A DNA stretch of 64,000 nucleotides from Rebecca billardiae RCC1528 (Eukaryota; Protista; Haptophyta): positions 1,178,001 through 1,242,000 of the forward strand of contig OZ251231.1 of the NCBI GenBank assembly GCA_965240325.2, written 5' to 3'. Positions 32,368-42,400 of the stretch are shown here, in pieces (within the stretch, counting starts at the first letter, position 1; each line of letters begins with the position of its first letter). Under the pieces are notes generated by a model. The model searched no databases, was not told the DNA's origin, and saw only the letters and a list, made by a program, of their open reading frames with translations. Position numbers and translations under genes: made by a program.

Positions 32368-34549
32368 TCAGAGCACATCCATGACGAGCAGAGGCCTGCC
32401 GATGCAGCCGACAACGATTCGCGTGTCGTGACACGCCACCCGGGTGCACCGACTCATGATCGGCGCAGGCAGCACGGCTCGGAGGTTGTTGGCGAGCGCG
32501 TCCGGCTCGTCCCCGACAGGCCGCGCCTCCGGGCTGCTCCACAGCTTGACGCTGCTGTCGAAGGAGGAGGTGACGATGGTGTCCGCCGTGATCTGCACGC
32601 CGGCGATCGCGTCGTCGTGCGCGTCCACCATCGTCGCGTACGGCCCGCGCTCGAACGCGCGCAGGTCCCAGATGTTGAGCGAGCCGTCGGTCGCACCGGA
32701 GACGAGCATGTTGTCTCGCACGTCGAGCGACCAGACAGGGCTCTCGACTCCAGAGCCAGGGCCTGCTGCCACGGGCTGGTGCGCCTTGCCGGCTGCGCCG
32801 CACAACACAGGCGCACAGGGGCGCGCGCGCGCGGAGGAAGGGGGGGGAGTCAGGCGCGCGTGCGGCGCACGGGTGGGCGGGCGGGCGCGTACGCGCGGCG
32901 CGCGCGGCGCGGCGCACCGATGCGCAGGTCCCACTGCAGCACGCGCCCGTCATCGCCGCCCGTGAAGACGAGCCCGCTGCGCGCAGAGCGCGTCAGGCCG
33001 CACACGTGACCCGTGTGTGCCTCGAACGAGTGAACGCTCCGTCCGGACCAGTCCCACTGGCGCATCGAGCCGTCGAACGAGGTGGAGAGGAGGCCATTGT
33101 CGTACCCGAGCGTGCTCACGATCGGGCCCATGTGCCCGAGCATGTTGAGCAGCACGCGCGGCGAGTCTGCGCTCGACTCGGCCGAGCCGTCCAGCGGGGG
33201 CACCGCCCACACCTTCAGGATAGAGTCGAAGCCGCCGGAGACGACGCGGCGGCACTCGCGCGGCTCGAGCCACAGCGCGAGCACGCCCACGCCGTGCGAG
33301 GAGAGCGTGTACAGCACCTCGTGCGTGCACATGTCGCGCAGCTGCACCGTGCCGTCCTCGGACGACGACGCGCACACGCAGCCGTCTTCGGAGAGACACA
33401 CGCCATACACGGGGCCCTGGTGGCCGTCGACGCCGCCGAGCAGCGTCTGCGTCGCCTCGCCGCGCGCCCAGCGGCGCGCGTGCTCGAAGCGCTCGCGGTA
33501 GAGCACGCGCCAGTCACGCGCGAAAGCCGCCCCGCCATGCGCCGCGGGGGCGTCCCGCGCGCCGCCCTCCTCTGGCCCACCGAGCCGCGCGGCAGCGCCG
33601 GAGTAGTCGGCGGCGCAACGGACGCGCCACATCAGCTGCGCGCTCGCGATGCGTGCAAAGATGCGGCAGCACGAAGCGGCCGTGCCGAGCGGCTGCACGG
33701 GGAGCCAGCAGAGTACCTCGTGTACGAGGTCGTCCGTCAGCTTCGCGAGCAGCTCGCAGCCACCGGCGTCTGCGTCGGGATCGCCCTGCGACGCTGCGCG
33801 CCCGCCGCCTGTGCTGTCGTCGCCGCCCGCCGCCTCGTCGCTCCCTGCTGGCGGCAGCGCGTGCGGACGGCGTGCACGCGCCTCGTCGAGCTTCGACGCC
33901 AGCGACGTGCGCCATTCGGCCCGCTGCCGCTCGTCCACGCCCTCCGCGTCGCCCAGCTGCGCGCCGCTGCCGCGCGACGCGTCCAGGCGGCTGAGCGCGG
34001 CTCTGAACGTCTCCACCGCCGCGTCCACGAGGCCGAGCTGCAGCTGCGCGGCGCTGCGCGGCGGTGCGCGGGCGGAAGGGCGCAGACGAGAGGGCAGATG
34101 CGCTGTGCTGAGCCACACGCACGCGCCGAGGTGGCGCGGCGCACGGCTCGCTCGGCCGCGCGGCGCGCGCACCCGAGCCGATGGTGACCCTTCACGAACG
34201 ACGAGTCGAGGCTGACCGCCGCGTGCGCGTCGTCGAGGGCGTCGCGCGCGAGGCCGAGGGCAAGGTACGCGGCCGAGCGGTTGCCCAGCAGCTGCGCCTG
34301 CGTGCTCGCGCCCGCGCCACCCACGTTGAGCGCGTCCGTGTACAGCCGGACGGCGAGCGCGTATGACTGGCGCGCAAACGCCTTGTTGCCCGCCGAGCGG
34401 AGTCGCACGATGCGGCGATCGTCCAAGCGGCGCTTGACGAGCGTATAGCGCGCGACGAGGTCCTGCCGCTCCACGCAGTCCGCGTACTTCACGCCCCGCC
34501 GGTCAAGGAAGGCCTTGATCTGCGAGAGAGGCGTGACGGCCGCGGCCAT
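32368..34549 (-). CDS. SAP/HeH-like + TPR + F-box + WD40 protein; exons 34549-34173, 34053-32918, 32792-32368
   Basis: IKAFLDRRGV..CVERQDLV; TPR GNKAF..Y..A..LYT.AL and NRSAAY; F-box LTDDLVHEVLCWLP..CCR; about 7 WD repeats (GH...SEDGTV, GFDSILKVW, SFDGSMRQWD). Introns are phase-consistent. Confidence 0.85.
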
Positions 34550-34849
34550 CGTCGGCCGACTCACGTCCAAGCTCTTGCAGGAGACCGGAGGCCCCGCCCG
34601 GGCCCGGTCCGGAAGCTCGAAATCTATGATGAGTAAGTACTGGTAGATAGCCGGTATTGTAGCGGTGATCGATGACCAATTAATTTTCGCGCGTGTCTCC
34701 GACCGAATCTCCGCGGGCGAAACCGGCGTTTGTGCGTTGGTTAGCGCTGGGGCGGACGACTTCACCCTCGGCGACAGCGGCACCTCGGCGGCGCTCGCGC
34801 CGGAGCTTTTAGCAGGGCTCGACACGCTTGGAGCTCGCGTTACCCGAAC

Positions 34850-35599
34850 ATGAGCATGATGCCCGGCTCATCCCGCAAGGCCGCGGACGCGCCGGCAGGC
34901 TCTCGCAATAGCACTGCCGTCGGGTTGGCCGTCGAAAACATCTTGGCTGCTCTTCAGGAGACGAATGATCCCGAGGGGCTTGTGAAGCTCTTGCGCGAGG
35001 GCGCCATGGGATTCGATGACGCCGTGATGCGCGAGCCTTGGCGAGATGTGATGGGCAAGGAGCGCGAGCGCATTGCCAACATCGGCCTCGTGGCAGCCCT
35101 CTTCCTCACCATCTTCGTGCCTCTCGCCTTGCAGGAAGTCACCCCGATCGACGAGCCCCTGGCCAGCGGCATCAGCAGGGACGTGATGAAAACGGTGTAC
35201 CTGTGCTTCACCATGCTTGGGTCGTGCTCCTCGCTGGGGCTCACGATCTCAGACGTGCTCTACCTGGCCAACATGGGCGAAGCAGTGCGCGATCTGGACG
35301 ACTTTGTCACGTTCCATGGGAAGAACTACGTCCTCTCCATCCTCGTCCCGCTCTATATCAACATCATCTCCTTCATCGGCGCCCTCCTGACAGGGATCGC
35401 CGTCGTCCATCCAGAGCCCGCGCTCACTGTGATCCTCTGCGTGGGGCTGGCCACGATGGTTCTCTTCATCGGTCTCGTCGTCCCCATGCAGCTCAGCTAT
35501 GGTACGCTCAAGCAGAGGACGAGGCAGGGCCTTGTGGGCGCTGCGAGCAAGGGCCAGATCATCGACCAGGCCTGGGAGGTGTTCCAGTCTCGCCGCTAG
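34850..35599 (+). CDS. Four-TM membrane protein (PGG-like)
   Basis: NIGLVAALFLTI plus three further hydrophobic helices. Confidence 0.75.
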   Translation: MSMMPGSSRKAADAPAGSRNSTAVGLAVENILAALQETNDPEGLVKLLREGAMGFDDAVMREPWRDVMGKERERIANIGLVAALFLTIFVPLALQEVTPIDEPLASGISRDVMKTVYLCFTMLGSCSSLGLTISDVLYLANMGEAVRDLDDFVTFHGKNYVLSILVPLYINIISFIGALLTGIAVVHPEPALTVILCVGLATMVLFIGLVVPMQLSYGTLKQRTRQGLVGAASKGQIIDQAWEVFQSRR

Positions 35600-36038
35600 C
35601 TCCGGTCCCGGGGCTGGGGCTCCAGCTGACCGGCGGCATCGCAGGACTTTGCCAGCTACATTCCGCCAGCTAGTTCACGGTCACGCGGACAGTGAGTCGT
35701 GAGACCGATCCGTTACTAAGCTAAATACTAATACTTACGGTCTCTGACTAGCTCATGCTGGCAAATAAGTTGATTGACTCACTCCAGCAAGACTACTAAT
35801 GGTCCGCGCGGAGTGACACCGCCGCGCGGACGGGCCGGGAGACGGGCGGGAGCGTCAAGCTGTCAGCCTGTCCGAGCAGGCCGGCAGACACGGGACTCCG
35901 GACCGTTGGCACTCGCAGTACAGGCAGTAGGCTACGACTAGTACTCGAGTACTGACTCGGACTAGTGCACGTCTGGCACGACACGCAGACCGGCGGACTG
36001 GCTGAGAGTCAAGCGGACTGCCAGTAGTGTCAGGTCGA

Positions 36039-37331
36039 TCAGCTCTGCATGTGCTGCACAACGTCGAAGTCGTTGTAGTTGATGTTTGCAGCGACTACCC
36101 GCGAGCGGCAGTACGCGGCAAACGCCGTCGCGATCCGCCACACAGCGCGGCCAACGACACGCTCCTTCTCCGCCGACACGTAATGTGAAAAGCGGCTGTT
36201 GGCACCGCCCTCGAGCAAGAAGTAGTTGAAGGGGTGGTCGTGCCCGCCGAGCTTGTGGCTGATGATGTGATCGATTTGGTATCGGCAGAGCTCGTGCGCG
36301 GCGACGGGGCACTCCTCGGGGTGCCGGAAGAGCCACTCGCGCACCGCCGCGGTGCTCATCCGGCCGCCGCCAGTCTCACTCACGAGCGCAGGCACGTAGC
36401 CAAGGTATCGGCGCGCGCGCGGCAGCGCGTGGAGATCAACGCCGGTGAGCTCGGAGCTCCCCTCGGCGGCGCACTGGCTCGCCTTCTCGTCGGTGAGTGG
36501 TCTCTGCGGTGTGCGCGCCTGTGTCGCCTCGGCGGCGTTGCGCTCCGAGGCCGTCGCGATGGTTGAGAGTGGCCGCGTAAGCCGCGGTGGCGGCGGCGGC
36601 GGCGGCGAGGCGATCATAGCTGCAAGCATGGAGGCGCGCTCGGTGTTCGCCGCGCCGGCGAGCACAGCGAGCTCAATGGCCACCGGAGTCTCACACTTGA
36701 CGTTCGAGTTGGCGCTGTCGTCGCCGCTGGGCTGCCTGGCAGCGGAGTCGGCGGCCTTGGCCTCGCGAGCCGCCGCCGCCTTGCGCATGGAGCGGTACTT
36801 GTCAGAGAGCTGTATGTTGGAGCGCTCGCGCAGCGCGTCGGCGAGCGTCGCATCCGACTTGATTGCCATCCAGTTGCCCGGCCCATGCCGCTGCAGCCCC
36901 TCCGTCAGCGCGTCGACCTCTGTGGGTGTCCATGAACGGCGCGGCGTGGCGGTATGAGCGGCGCAGCCCTCGGTTGAGCGTGTCGGCGTTCGAGCTCCGT
37001 CACTCGGCCGGTCGGGCGTCTCGGCGCCACCACCGGCTGAGGTGAACGCTACGCTTTCGCTGCGCAGAAGCGAGCGCCCCTTCCGCTGCAGGTCCAGGTT
37101 CGACCTCCGGCCGAGCGTGACGCTGAACTCGGGATCTGCCTTGATACTGGCCCACACGTACACTGCGCCGCGGTGCTTGGCAAGGGCGCTCTTCAGCGCG
37201 CGCGTCTCTTCGTCAGTCCAGTTGACGCGCGGCTTGCGCGTTGACTGCCGCGCCCCGTCGACCTCAAGCGCAGCGAAGAGCGCGCTTAGCTCCTCCGCGG
37301 AGGGCGCATCGGCGCCGTCCAGGCCGGCCAT
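36039..37331 (-). CDS. Tandem telobox/TRF-type Myb protein with C-terminal HNH-type endonuclease motif
   Basis: Myb1 RVNWTDEETRAL..W..I...RSNLDLQRK; Myb2 RSWTPTEVDAL.EGL..HG.GNW..I...RSNIQLSDKYR; C-terminal QIDHII...GGHDHPFNY...AN. Confidence 0.85.
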   Translation of the reverse strand: MAGLDGADAPSAEELSALFAALEVDGARQSTRKPRVNWTDEETRALKSALAKHRGAVYVWASIKADPEFSVTLGRRSNLDLQRKGRSLLRSESVAFTSAGGGAETPDRPSDGARTPTRSTEGCAAHTATPRRSWTPTEVDALTEGLQRHGPGNWMAIKSDATLADALRERSNIQLSDKYRSMRKAAAAREAKAADSAARQPSGDDSANSNVKCETPVAIELAVLAGAANTERASMLAAMIASPPPPPPPRLTRPLSTIATASERNAAEATQARTPQRPLTDEKASQCAAEGSSELTGVDLHALPRARRYLGYVPALVSETGGGRMSTAAVREWLFRHPEECPVAAHELCRYQIDHIISHKLGGHDHPFNYFLLEGGANSRFSHYVSAEKERVVGRAVWRIATAFAAYCRSRVVAANINYNDFDVVQHMQS

Positions 37332-37474
37332 CGGCCGGGGAAAGTGAGCCCGCGCGCCGTTTCGCGGAATCGCGCCCCCCCCCCCGGCTCTGAGAAGTCT
37401 GACCGAAGAACTTCGTCAGAACAGCTGGCGTGACGGTCCTGGGTCGCGCCAGGGCGCCCGCGCTCCAAGTCGCG

Positions 37475-38347
37475 ATGCCGCCGTTCGGGGAAAGCGGGAG
37501 CAGGCTCGCGCTGACCGCGGGCGCTGCGGCCGCGGCGCTGCTCGCGGCGGGCGGCATCCGCCTCTGGCTGCGGCGCTCGCGTCAACGCGCCGAGCGCGAA
37601 TCGCTCGAGCGCCTCGCGGCGCGCCTGTCGACCTCCGTCAAGGAGCTCGAGCAGGCGGAGGCTCTGAATCTGATCAACCAGAACCTCGACGACACAGACG
37701 CGTTGGCGCTGTGCGCGCTGCTGCGCCGGCCGTCGTGCGCGCTAGAGGAGCTGTACGTGTGGAACAACAACATCTCGCACGTCGGCGTGGCGGCCATCGG
37801 CCACGTGCTCCCGCTGAACACCTCGCTGCGTGCGCTCTGGCTCTCGCGCAACGCACTGGGGGATGCTGGCGTGGTGGCGCTCGCGCGCGGGCTGCGGCGC
37901 CACCCCGCACTCACCGACCTGCGGCTGGCCGCCACCGCGATGAGTGACCACGGCGCCTGCGCGCTCGCGCGCGCGCTGGCCGGCGGCTCCCTGCCCCTCA
38001 AGGAGCTGCACCTCTCCGCTAACGCCATCGGCGACCGGGGCGCGCGTGCGCTTGCGCGCGCGCTGCTGGCTGCGCCGGACCTGCAGCTCCTCGCGCTCAA
38101 CTCGAATCGTATCGGCGAGCCCGGCGCGCGCGCGCTTGGCGGCTGCCTCCTGCGCTCCGCCGTGCGCGAGCTCTGGATCGGGCACAACCCGCTCGGCGAC
38201 GAGGGCGCGCTCGCCGTCTCAGACGGCGCGCTCGGTGGCGTCGTGGAGCGACTGTCGCTGGTCGACGTGCCGTTGAGCGAGGCGGCGCAGGCGAAGCTGC
38301 GCGAGAACCCGGTGTGGTCCAGCGGCTACCGTGCGCTGGCGCTGTGA
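37475..38347 (+). CDS. RNI-like leucine-rich repeat protein with N-terminal membrane anchor
   Basis: 28-aa LxxLxLxxNxIGDxGA repeats; hydrophobic ALTAGAAAAALLAAGGIRLWL. Confidence 0.88.
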   Translation: MPPFGESGSRLALTAGAAAAALLAAGGIRLWLRRSRQRAERESLERLAARLSTSVKELEQAEALNLINQNLDDTDALALCALLRRPSCALEELYVWNNNISHVGVAAIGHVLPLNTSLRALWLSRNALGDAGVVALARGLRRHPALTDLRLAATAMSDHGACALARALAGGSLPLKELHLSANAIGDRGARALARALLAAPDLQLLALNSNRIGEPGARALGGCLLRSAVRELWIGHNPLGDEGALAVSDGALGGVVERLSLVDVPLSEAAQAKLRENPVWSSGYRALAL

Positions 38348-38911
38348 GCGGTGCCAGGTGTGGCGGCCGAGCGCATGGCCGCCGCCCCACGCCCGCGCTG
38401 GCGCGCTGCCTGTCTGCGGAGTGGTGCCAGTCCGCGAGCGTGGACGGTGAAGGCACGCATGCTGCCGCCTGCCGCCGTGCGGGCCAGCCGTAGGCTACTG
38501 AGTGGCCATGCACGCGCGTGGCCGTCGCGGCGGCACCCCTTACTCGAGGCCATACTGGATACATGGATACTGGATACATGGATGACCCCCAGCGCCATCG
38601 ACCTCGCTGATGAGCGTGCCCTCCGTGGGTCTCAGAGTACTGTTGCCGAGCCTGATTGAGTGATTCGTGAACCGTGGCCGTCGGAACGCGACGACGGCCG
38701 AGTGCCGGCACTCGGCAGTCACAGTCGTCCGACAGGCGGCCATCGGGCCTCGGCCCGCCTCGCAGTGATTCTCACTCATTCGGCGTCTTACGACTTACCG
38801 TCGCGGGTGCTTAGCACTTAGCCATGAAAGGCTGAAAGCCATGCCCGGGCCCTGCCGGCAGTGAATTTTCTGTGAAATGGGTGCGACTCCGAGTCCGACA
38901 CTCCGTGCGTT

Positions 38912-39142
38912 ATAAGAGACGCGCGCACTCTGTACAGCTCAGGCCGCAGGCGTCCTACCTGTCACTGAGTGTAGTAGGGTCAGATGACTGTACCTGTGTC
39001 GTTAAATCATATAGAATGAGATTGACGCCGCCAACTGTCACCGCCCTGATGAAGCCGTCGCCGACGAGCCCGACGACGATGGTAGCGCCGCCTGAAGATT
39101 CGTTCAGCCGTCCGCCTGCGAGGCCTGGATGAGGGCTGCGGC
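38912..39142 (+). repeat. Degenerate, interrupted copy of the dispersed terminus element
   Basis: ataagagacgc...cagctcagg..caggcg, then gagattgacgcc...cgaggcctggatgaggg matching ~12786-12887. Confidence 0.75.
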
Positions 39143-39470
39143 CGCCTCGCGGCGCGCCAGCGCCCGTCCGGGCCGTCGTCCTCGCGACCTCGCCCCACCG
39201 TCGTCCACAAAACGTCGTCGTCCGAACTCTCCGACTGGGCGCCGATGCGACATACAGCGTTGTACCAGTATTCAGTAATCGTTGTAATCATCGTGTCGCG
39301 GGTTTCGCAAATCGAATTTCTTCAGCATCGGGCTGTGCGTGAAGAACTGCACACGTGCACACCTTCTTGGCGAAGTCATCTCAAGTTTCGATGCCGAGCG
39401 CTTGAGAGCTGCTCCTCATCGGAGTTTGCAGGGTGGCTGCCTACGGCGTCCCCGATCGACCCGGCACGGG

Positions 39471-42400
39471 ATGCTGTCCGCGCTCTTCAGCGGCCCAGTG
39501 CGTGTGGACGAGGTGTACGCGCCGCTCTTTGAGGGCAACAAGCGGCACCACGGCTGCTCAGTCACTCAGATCGAGAAGCGGGGCGTCACGCTCGCGCAGC
39601 TGCGGCGCGCGTGCAAATACACCCTAGGGCGCGCGATTGCGGAGCGGTGGACGTCAGTGGCGCCGGAGAGGCGAGGCCAGCCGCTGACGGAGGAGAATCT
39701 GACGCTGAACGACTTCGTGCAGCTGGTCGTCCTTCCCGCCACCGCCCGGCGCGACTGCTCCTTTGTCGAGCTCGTTGCAACCAAGCCGCAGCCGCCTCGC
39801 TGGCTCGTGTCGGTGTGGGGCGGGCAGCCACTGGCGGAGGTCGTCGCGTGCCTCGAGCAGCACGTGAACGACCACCGCGATCTGAGCGAGGACGACGCGT
39901 ACTGGGTGCGCCGCGCCACGCGTGCCGCTGCCGCGCCGTGCCCCGCCTCCGCCCGCCAGCGCGCAGCTGGGCCGCATACGCCCGCGAGCTCACCCCACGC
40001 CCGCGCGCACACCGCACACCGCGCGCGCGGCTCGCGGTGCGGTTGGTGCGTGCAGGTGTACGCGTGCGCGGCGAACCCGCGGGAGCAGGCCTCCGAGCTC
40101 CCGCGCGCGCTGACCGTGCGCGACCTCGCCTTCCACCGCGTCATGTCCAGCGTGGAGGGCGCGGTCACGCTGCTCGACCGGCAGGGGACGGCTCTCTCGG
40201 CGCGCGCGTGGTGCGCGCTCGAGCTGTACGAGGCGACGCACTCGCGCGGCGTCGACCTGAAGCACGAGGTGTACACCGCGGTGCAGCAGGGCGACGACGA
40301 CGACGACCAGTTCCCCGCCGACGACGCGCCGGCCGTCGGCCTGACCGACGGCTACGCTGCGTTCGACCTCGGCAGCGCCGCAACCAAGGCGCGGCGCGAG
40401 CGCGCATTCCCCGCCCTTCTTGCTTCTCGCGCGCTCGACTTTAAGCTCGAGGCGGCGCAGGCGGCGTCGGAGGAGGACCGCGAGGGGATCGTCGGGCTCG
40501 TCGGCGACGACGCCGGCCCGTTCAACTCCACCGTGCGCGCGCGCGTCGGCGCCGCCCTGCTCGTCCGATGGCTGGACGACATCGCGGCCGGCCACCGCAC
40601 CGGCATCGTTCAACTCGCGCCGAGCGCAAGTGCCGCGAGCCTGGGCGGCGGCAGCCGGCGCTCGAGCGGCGGCAGCTACGCGAGCAGCAGCGGCGGCGGC
40701 GGCGGCGGGCTCTTCACCCCGTGCGGCGCGCGCGCGCGCTCGCGGCTGCCCCCGGACGCCGCCCCGCTGCTCGGCCCGACCCTCGCCAACCTGAAGGCCT
40801 CGCACCTGCGCAAGCTCGAGGTGATCCGGGCAGACGCAGACAAGCCGGTCGGCGGCTCTCTCCTTTCGCCCAACCTGCCGAGCACGCTGGAGGAGCTCCG
40901 GCTGCGCGGCGTGAGCGCGGAGGTGGCGCACGGCGCGGCGCGGCTGCTCCGCCTCGCCGACCTCCGAGTCCTCCAGCTCCACTCGTGCGCGCTCGACGAC
41001 CGCTCCGCCGAGCAGATGGGCAAGGCGGTGCTGAACAACGGAAGCCTGCGCGAGCTCGATCTCGCGGGCAACGCGATCGGCGACGCCGGCATGCGCGCGC
41101 TCGGCGCGGGACTGCAGCGGTGCAGGCGGCTCGCGCTCGTCGACCTCTCGTGCGCGCGCGCGCGCGCATCGCGCGCCGCGCCCGTGTGCGTGGCGCCCTG
41201 CGCGCGCGCGCTGCGCTCGCTGCGGCCACACGGCTGCCGGCTGTGACGCTGCCTGTGCATACACCGCGCGCGGGCGCGCGCCGTGTGCCATCGCGCGCCG
41301 CTCGTCGGCCGCGGCGCCAGGGCGAATCGCATCTCGGACAACGGCGCCGCCGCCCTGGCGCAAGTCCTCACCGGCTGCAAAACCGTGCGCGTGCTTGACC
41401 TGAGGTGCGCGCCGAGACTGCCGCGCCGCGCGCCAAGCTCGGCCGCACTGCGCGGCGCGTGTGTCGTTCTTGCGCGCGGCTCCGGAGGGCAGGCAGAGCC
41501 CGGGGCGCCGCCGCGCGGACGCCGACCGGGCTGGCGCTGGCCTCGCCATGTGCTGCGCTGCGCGCGCGGCGATCTGTGCACTCGGCGGGGGCATGCGCCC
41601 GTCGAGCTGGATCTCACGCCCCAAGCTCCCGCCCGCCCTCCCGCCGCCCACCCGCCCGCCCGCCCGCCCGTGCGCCCCGCCCGCGCGCCCGCCTCCGCCC
41701 CGCGCGCCGCGCGCCGCGCGCCACAAGCTCCAACCGGATCGGGGACACGGGCGTGACCGCGCTGGCGCAGGGCGTGTCTGCGAGCAAGAAGCTCTTCGAG
41801 CTACAGCTGAGGTGTGCTTTGCGCGCGGCGCGGATCGCGCGGCGCACGCCGCGCACGCCGCGCGCACGCGCGAGGGCGTCCACTGGCCACCGTCTCCTCC
41901 GGCACCGGCGCGCTCGGCGCTGCCAAGCGTGTTACGCGTGTGCGAGCGTGCCGCGCCCCTGCTGCGCCGCACCGCCATGCTGCCCTGTGCGCCCACGCCG
42001 CCCGGTGCGGCGCAGCGACAACAAGCTGACAGACAGGGGCGTCGCCGCGATTGCGTCCGCGCTGACCAAGGCGAAGGCGCTGGCGATCCTCGGCCTCAGG
42101 TGAGCCACGCGCGACACGCCGTCCGCCGCCCGCGGCCGCGCGGCTGCGCAGCCGTGGCACCGCGGCCATTGATCGATCCTCGCCCCGCTGACCTCTGCCG
42201 CGCCCGCGCGCCCGCGCGAATCGGCCGCGCCGCCCAGCCACAACTCGATCGGCGACGGCGCAGCCAATGCCCTTGGAGAAGCGCTGCTCAAGCGCACCGC
42301 GCTCTCGGCTCTGTTTCTCGAGTGCGCGCCGTCGGCCGTGCCGTGCCGTGCGCGCCCCCAGCAAGCACGAGCGCCGCGCCGCGCGAGGCCGCGCGCGTCC

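Follow-up and report, generated by a model that had tools for sequence, protein, structure and literature searches.

What might a eukaryotic alga gain from a protein that links Myb domains, one of them of the class found in telomere-binding proteins, to a nuclease domain resembling that of Cas9? The question is raised by a gene in a 64,000-nucleotide stretch of the haptophyte Rebecca billardiae RCC1528 (contig OZ251231.1, positions 1,178,001 to 1,242,000 of assembly GCA_965240325.2), the whole of which we refer to as the window. A first-pass annotation, made from the letters alone, had proposed that in this gene nature has fused Myb domains to a nuclease of the HNH (beta-beta-alpha-Me) type. 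Our analysis bears that proposal out, as all of the catalytic positions are kept and the architecture is conserved in other algae. We consider the product, which we call Myb-HNH (P0001), likely to be a modular nuclease of the host nucleus that is directed to particular DNA sites, a reading drawn from comparative sequence analysis and structural models.

The gene is one uninterrupted open reading frame (ORF) of 430 codons plus a stop, intronless and precisely where the first-pass annotation had placed it (Table 1), and two Logan assemblies made independently of each other (L003 and L004) both yield the identical protein. An AlphaFold2 model of the full-length protein, made with a 77-row alignment, contains three confidently folded modules on disordered linkers: a divergent Myb (Myb1), a TRF/telobox-class Myb (Myb2), and a C-terminal HNH domain. 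The predicted local distance difference test score (pLDDT) is 94-98 over residues 35-99, 95-98 over residues 130-199, and 87-97 over residues 300-430, while the linkers mostly fall below 50 to 60 and the predicted template modelling score (pTM) of the whole chain is 0.44. Rigid modules, low-scoring linkers, and a low overall pTM together indicate that the modules are independent units on flexible tethers. The spans first given for the two Mybs (37235-37075 and 36945-36785, corresponding to residues 33-86 and 130-183) fit the folded modules, and the stretch described as a Pro/Ala linker is indeed Ala/Pro-rich and disordered; it cannot be aligned among orthologues. Pfam recognizes no domain in the chain besides Myb_DNA-binding, the remainder being disordered linker and the HNH domain.

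Sequence searches place the C-terminal domain in a large and apparently undescribed family. An exhaustive phmmer search of 1.84 billion cluster representatives with residues 288-430 recovered 113 protein clusters at E<=1e-3, of which 37 also passed E<=1e-10, mostly with the domain at the C-terminus. Other searches were far less productive: a word-indexed search with the full-length protein found only the protein itself and P0002, a region-restricted search found only itself and P0003, and a profile version returned nine metagenomic proteins. Across an alignment of 114 members with a mean column identity of 17%, the only columns conserved at 90% or more are D354, H355, G362, G363, N369, N378, and G394, and H355 is invariant in two of our alignments (A1 and A6). 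The retention of six motif positions amid such divergence sets the motif well beyond chance, and the D-H, GG, N, and N columns, which had been picked out in the window protein at the outset, are by their sequence the signature of an HNH nuclease. Relatives with the conserved His and Asn, a search for which had been proposed as a check, occur across the 113-cluster family.

The window protein carries this motif as QIDHIISHKLGGHDHPFNYFLLEGGANSRF at residues 352-381 (window positions 36189-36278). D354-H355 is assigned the roles of metal ligand and general base, with N369 and N378 as the further conserved Asn residues; the D-H pair ends the first strand, an Asn follows 14 residues on, and the metal-binding Asn comes 9 residues after that. 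Zinc-binding cysteines are absent from the domain, and the layout is that of the H-N-N type found in Cas9 and IscB (HNH_4-like). The family also has motifs of its own, namely GGxDHPxNYF and, in an N-terminal helical part, YLG...MST..VR.WL.

Profile and structure comparisons converge on the same assignment. Among the 114 members, weak Pfam matches (E<=0.01) were found to HNH_5 in 15, to HNH_4 in 14, and to HNH in 5, matches that fall under the Pfam cut-offs in the members inspected singly, and the NCBIfam models for Cas9d and IscB matched 40 and 12 members, respectively. When the family profile was compared with the PDB, every match was an HNH domain (Cas9, group II intron maturase, Cas8-HNH, ZRANB3, and McrA). 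The best of these, the GeoCas9 HNH domain (E 0.0067), aligns without gaps across DH...N...N and onward into the helices after the core; the ZRANB3 HNH domain stands at E 0.38. An AlphaFold2 model of the domain, built with the family alignment, reaches a pLDDT of 93.1 and a pTM of 0.84 and has a beta-beta-alpha core of two strands (64-68 and 83-87 in the numbering of the domain model) and a helix (88-94), and the same core appears in the full-length model (strands 351-355 and 370-374, helix 375-381). Structure prediction, which had been suggested as a check, yielded a confidently modeled core of this beta-beta-alpha form. Lists returned by Foldseek, VIA-align, the ESM Atlas, BFVD, and protein-language-model features are dominated by HNH/beta-beta-alpha-Me nucleases.

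Several results weigh against this assignment. The C-terminal domain of the window protein has no Pfam HNH match even at E<=10, its only such signal is a faint match to IscB (E 0.11), and its structural model resembles solved HNH domains at low scores only (Foldseek E>=0.03, VIA Z<=4.1, and template modelling [TM] scores of 0.40-0.47 in the atlas). The HNH assignment is founded on the convergence of many weak signals with the conserved catalytic columns, and on these grounds the C-terminus is probably a catalytically competent HNH domain.

The two Myb modules, both modeled at pLDDT 94-98, differ sharply in their closest relatives. Pfam Myb_DNA-binding matched the protein in two stretches (E 4.5e-9), the Myb2 part covering residues 131-158. 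When Myb2 alone (residues 122-192) was compared with the PDB by phmmer, the top 20 matches were all Mybs of telomere proteins, led by TRF2 (3.4e-5) and TRF1 (1.1e-4) and followed by Tbf1, zebrafish Terfa, and plant TBP1/TRP, with SNAPc4 and c-Myb ranking far below. A profile from ten orthologous Myb2 domains reached TRF1 at 1.4e-11, and in Foldseek the Myb2 model superimposes on the TRF1 and TRF2 Mybs with TM scores of 0.79-0.85 and a root-mean-square deviation (rmsd) of 1.3-1.7 A. Myb1, with predicted helices at residues 40-52, 59-65, 67-73, and 78-99, is kept in six orthologues at 36-48% identity, with R35, W38, T39, and E42 among its invariant positions, and carries a family-specific motif, SLGRRSNxDL. 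Its profile drew only weak generic matches from the PDB (MYB21 at 4.6e-4 and Reb1 at 0.05). Both repeats had been called TRF-like; as judged from sequence and model, Myb2 is a TRF/telobox-class Myb, but Myb1 is better described as a genuine, divergent, family-specific Myb outside the telobox type.

The recognition helix of Myb2, RSNIQLSDKYRSMRK, deserves closer scrutiny. Its ending, RSNIQLSDKYR, had been likened to the telobox, and the likeness is closer in most of its relatives, which carry R[ST]NVQLKDKYR, near the telobox VDLKDKWR; an LKDK or LKDR core is kept in six of nine Myb2 relatives, most of which have Y or H in place of the Trp. The likeness is less complete in the window protein itself, where IQLSDKYR has Ser (S175) for the first telobox Lys and Tyr for the Trp. 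Myb2 does retain features typical of DNA-reading TRF Mybs, namely a basic N-terminal arm and, in the recognition helix, the D-K-x-R residues.

The distribution of the fusion speaks to its origin. Seven relatives (P0003-P0009) have HNH domains 52-61% identical to that of the window protein, each accompanied by orthologues of both Myb1 and Myb2, and two more (P0026 and P0028) join the HNH domain to a Myb2-type repeat only; the fusion also recurs in P0142, a cluster member of P0028. The closest named orthologue is from another haptophyte, Diacronema lutheri (KAG8466264.1), a protein of 652 residues with three Mybs and an HNH domain that is 55% identical over 130 residues by tblastn and 57% by phmmer. 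A MMETSP transcript from the cryptophyte Hanusia phi also encodes a Myb and an HNH_4 match (E 0.0011), and several metagenomic algae carry the fusion as well. Myb-less branches of the HNH family include Euglena mutabilis (a transcript) and Paulinella micropora. In a quick tree search on the HNH domain, one branch suffices to set all of the Myb-bearing rows apart, requiring one change, with a Shimodaira-Hasegawa-like approximate likelihood-ratio test (SH-aLRT) value of 81, a topology consistent with a single origin of the Myb and HNH fusion.

Beyond the Myb-bearing clade, Paulinella micropora has at least three members in one 90% cluster, of 106, 384, and 564 residues (P0084, P0179, and P0180), and one family member elsewhere bears a SAP domain in place of the Mybs. 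Given these proteins, the HNH module seems to have been combined with different DNA binders. One further member lies on a contig that also bears an SBP-domain gene. A small branch (P0024:1-139 and P0038:1-143) reverses the usual order, with the HNH domain at the N-terminus and about 250 residues without a Pfam match after it. Finally, P0025, an HNH protein without a Myb, adjoins split N6/N4 and C5 DNA methyltransferase ORFs, and on a second contig a UvrD-type helicase (L007:2790-5608 and L008:3505-5916), surroundings that have a GC content of 58% and could be virus-like or restriction-modification-like.

Such a patchy spread over haptophytes, cryptophytes, euglenids, and Paulinella raises the best surviving rival explanation, that the protein is a free-standing homing-type HNH endonuclease of viral or bacterial ancestry, domesticated or still selfish, which cuts one specific genomic or foreign site and thereby either promotes its own spread or, like HO in yeast, introduces a break that is programmed. 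Free-standing homing endonucleases are typically built in just this way, from an HNH domain and a module of its own for DNA binding, every orthologue that we have seen is intronless, and the neighborhood of P0025 is what such an ancestry might leave behind. A BFVD viral protein of 139 residues, V5LQG6, matches the whole 143-residue HNH domain model (E 1e-5, TM 0.68-0.70), a fit well ahead of every solved structure, and may mark a giant-virus origin or transfer; an atlas cluster of Nucleocytoviricota proteins also matches the domain (TM 0.61).

The locus itself, however, does not behave as a mobile element. The gene is single-copy within the window, with no terminal inverted or direct repeats or duplications around it. 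The host is GC-rich, and the GC content at third codon positions is 0.83 for the ORF against 0.84-0.90 for its neighbors. Orthologues in Diacronema (L005) and on two further contigs (L009 and L010) are likewise uninterrupted ORFs, and their neighbors are ordinary and differ from genome to genome (adenylate kinase, FtsZ, and Sec7 in one; a galactosyltransferase and a sulfate transporter in another), while deeply diverged algal lineages have kept both Mybs and the HNH domain as orthologous modules. Pattern scans with two motif sets found no relatives in 2.9 million viral contigs, a scan of 185,579 prokaryotic genomes found none either, and a metagenome scan added only 4 weak loci, although these scans use narrow peptide patterns and a blank among them is weak evidence. 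PADLOC defence models gave scattered single matches only. Host-like codon usage, the lack of flanking repeats, and unrelated neighbors lead us to reject a mobile element and to read Myb-HNH as a gene of the host, whose distant ancestors may have been viral or bacterial, and we regard the homing-type explanation as unlikely.

A second rival would make the protein a structure-specific nuclease of chromatin or repair, in which Myb/SANT-like domains attach to histones or to nucleosomal or linker DNA irrespective of sequence and the HNH domain processes replication or repair intermediates, as that of ZRANB3 does. Myb2 indeed matches the SANT-type helix-turn-helix (HTH) model of CHD1, PF23588 (E 3.9e-5, under that model's cut-off), ZRANB3 is among the PDB matches of the HNH profile, and the gene, present once in the window, has the character of a housekeeping gene of the host. 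Myb2, however, matches sequence-specific telomeric Mybs far better than it matches SANT domains, its arm and D-K-x-R residues are typical of a DNA reader, and the absence of the gene from most eukaryotes argues against a core role in repair, all of which makes this explanation very unlikely. Weakest is the proposal of an HNH domain that has lost catalysis and does no more than bind DNA or protein, carried by what would be a transcription factor of the Myb kind or a protein that binds telomeres. Inactive HNH domains are known elsewhere, and the proposal is compatible both with public records that label the Diacronema and Hanusia orthologues only as 'Myb-like domain-containing protein' and with the missing Pfam match. 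We reject it as highly improbable: in an inactive domain the catalytic positions should be the ones to drift, yet D-H, N, and N make up most of what the 114 divergent members conserve, alongside the GG pair and G394.

We therefore return to a site-directed nuclease as the preferred reading and ask how it might work. The two Myb-type HTH domains, the second of the TRF/telobox class, would bind a specific duplex DNA site; a flexible linker of about 100 residues would tether them to the HNH domain; and the tethered HNH domain, of the HNN type seen in Cas9 and IscB, would cut DNA within linker reach of the bound site. With one active site per chain, the expected product is probably a nick in one strand, unless the protein dimerizes or two molecules cooperate. 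Catalytic activity and sequence-specific binding by the Mybs are what we infer from sequence and models. The acidic N-terminus, which lacks any leader of a hydrophobic or presequence-like kind, leads us to reject organelle targeting and would suit a nuclear protein.

What site might be read? Because Myb2 is TRF-class, the leading candidate target is TTAGGG-type DNA, at telomeres or in the interstitial telomeric repeats that the first-pass annotation had also named, albeit a tentative one that is more apt to be wrong than right. A series of observations counts against it: Myb1 lies outside the telobox type; S175 replaces a telobox Lys that we take to be a base-contact residue in TRF1/TRF2; the protein has no TRFH-type dimerization domain, and its Mybs are N-terminal, unlike the build of TRF1, TRF2, and Taz1; the window contains no telomere-repeat array with which to compare; and TRF-class Mybs occur also in proteins that bind non-telomeric sites. 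A narrower version of the idea, which we hold to be decidedly unlikely, is a telomere-repeat-directed nickase acting on TTAGGG tracts away from chromosome ends. Such an enzyme would keep interstitial telomeric repeats trimmed or under surveillance, or else would introduce staggered breaks whose healing adds telomere repeats.

The features of the gene are collected in Table 1.

Table 1. Myb-HNH gene and its encoded modules, in window positions (position 1 is the first letter of the window)
Feature	Window position	Strand	Evidence
Complete intronless ORF	36039..37331	-	ORF list; two Logan assemblies; GC content at third codon positions
Myb1, residues 33-99	37035..37235	-	AlphaFold2; conservation in orthologues; weak Myb profile matches in the PDB
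Myb2, residues 128-190	36762..36950	-	Pfam Myb_DNA-binding; PDB sequence matches; Foldseek
Disordered Ala/Pro-rich linker, residues 200-299	36435..36734	-	AlphaFold2 pLDDT mostly below 50 to 60
C-terminal HNH nuclease domain (predicted), residues 300-430	36042..36434	-	phmmer family; AlphaFold2; PDB profile matches; fold searches
Beta-beta-alpha-Me catalytic core (predicted), residues 351-381	36189..36281	-	Near-invariant columns; AlphaFold2 model; alignment with GeoCas9 HNH

On the opposite strand, an ORF for a 305-residue RNI-type leucine-rich-repeat protein (window:37430-38347, plus strand) starts about 100 bp from the Myb-HNH start codon. The two genes form a very compact divergent pair, for which a shared promoter is conceivable. 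An Rfam search of window positions 33000-40000 returned no match. The locus was found in no RNA run, and the contigs of three public runs compared with it are short and DNA-type, covering four small pieces at 100% identity. In one public run (X1), four contigs of 151-243 bases are 100% identical to the locus, one of them covering window:36263-36505, an identity that indicates the same organism or a near-identical strain in another sample at low depth.

To our knowledge, nature seldom joins a eukaryotic domain that reads DNA sequence to a small nuclease, except in mobile elements. A full-text search of the literature returned no description of a Myb-HNH protein or of a telomere-linked HNH nuclease. 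The fusion thus appears to be undescribed, as does the Cas9/IscB-like HNH family to which it belongs, one that is widespread in eukaryotic algae and whose 113 clusters Pfam has missed; its component parts, an HNH nuclease and a TRF-class Myb, are of kinds already known. Should the TRF-class Myb prove to read telomeric repeats, the protein would offer a testable handle on how algae process their telomeres, and a telomere-directed nickase, if real, would be the first natural nuclease targeted to telomere sequence and a cause of telomere-repeat seeding inside genes. If another motif is read, Myb-HNH would still be a compact, guide-free scaffold for a site-specific nuclease or nickase.

A comparison with known systems places these modules in context. 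The HNH domain is closest to the HNH_4 branch of Cas9, Cas9d, and IscB, with which it shares the catalytic layout of D-H, Asn, and metal-binding Asn, the lack of zinc-binding cysteines, and a gapless alignment with GeoCas9; the Cas9 and IscB HNH domains also appear among its weak fold matches. Unlike those enzymes, Myb-HNH lacks both RuvC and any part that would bind a guide RNA, and its surroundings are neither CRISPR nor omega-RNA; its gene is eukaryotic and nuclear, and targeting would be by protein Myb domains; and the similarity stays under every curated threshold in a family that has conserved motifs of its own. Type IV restriction enzymes of the ScoMcrA/EcoKMcrA kind supply the best Foldseek matches in the PDB (E 0.03-0.05) and also pair a DNA reader with a C-terminal HNH domain. 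They are, however, bacterial defence enzymes against modified DNA, their SRA and SBD readers are unrelated, and they superimpose poorly (rmsd 9-12 A over the whole domain).

Among telomere proteins, Myb2 is closest in both sequence and fold to TRF1/TRF2, Tbf1, and plant TBP1/TRP, and the presence of two Mybs in one chain recalls fungal Tay1/Teb1. Myb-HNH departs from the TRF1/TRF2 type in having N-terminal rather than C-terminal Mybs, no TRFH domain, a non-telobox Myb1, and Ser at the first Lys. We know of no nuclease domain in any of these telobox proteins, and TRF2 brings in telomeric nucleases, Apollo among them, in trans.

In overall design, the nearest parallels are homing endonucleases of the I-HmuI and HNH-AP2 types and the engineered zinc-finger and transcription activator-like effector nucleases (ZFN and TALEN). 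Myb-HNH reverses the order of the I-HmuI and HNH-AP2 enzymes, with DNA binding at the N-terminus and HNH at the C-terminus; its reader is a Myb, not an HTH, AP2, zinc-finger, or TALE module; and it is conserved as a host gene across algal phyla, with no intron, intein, or mobile context found. What it shares with all of them is an independent DNA reader linked to a small nuclease domain that cuts nearby, and with its Myb domains and Cas9-type HNH domain it looks like a natural enzyme in the style of a ZFN or TALEN.

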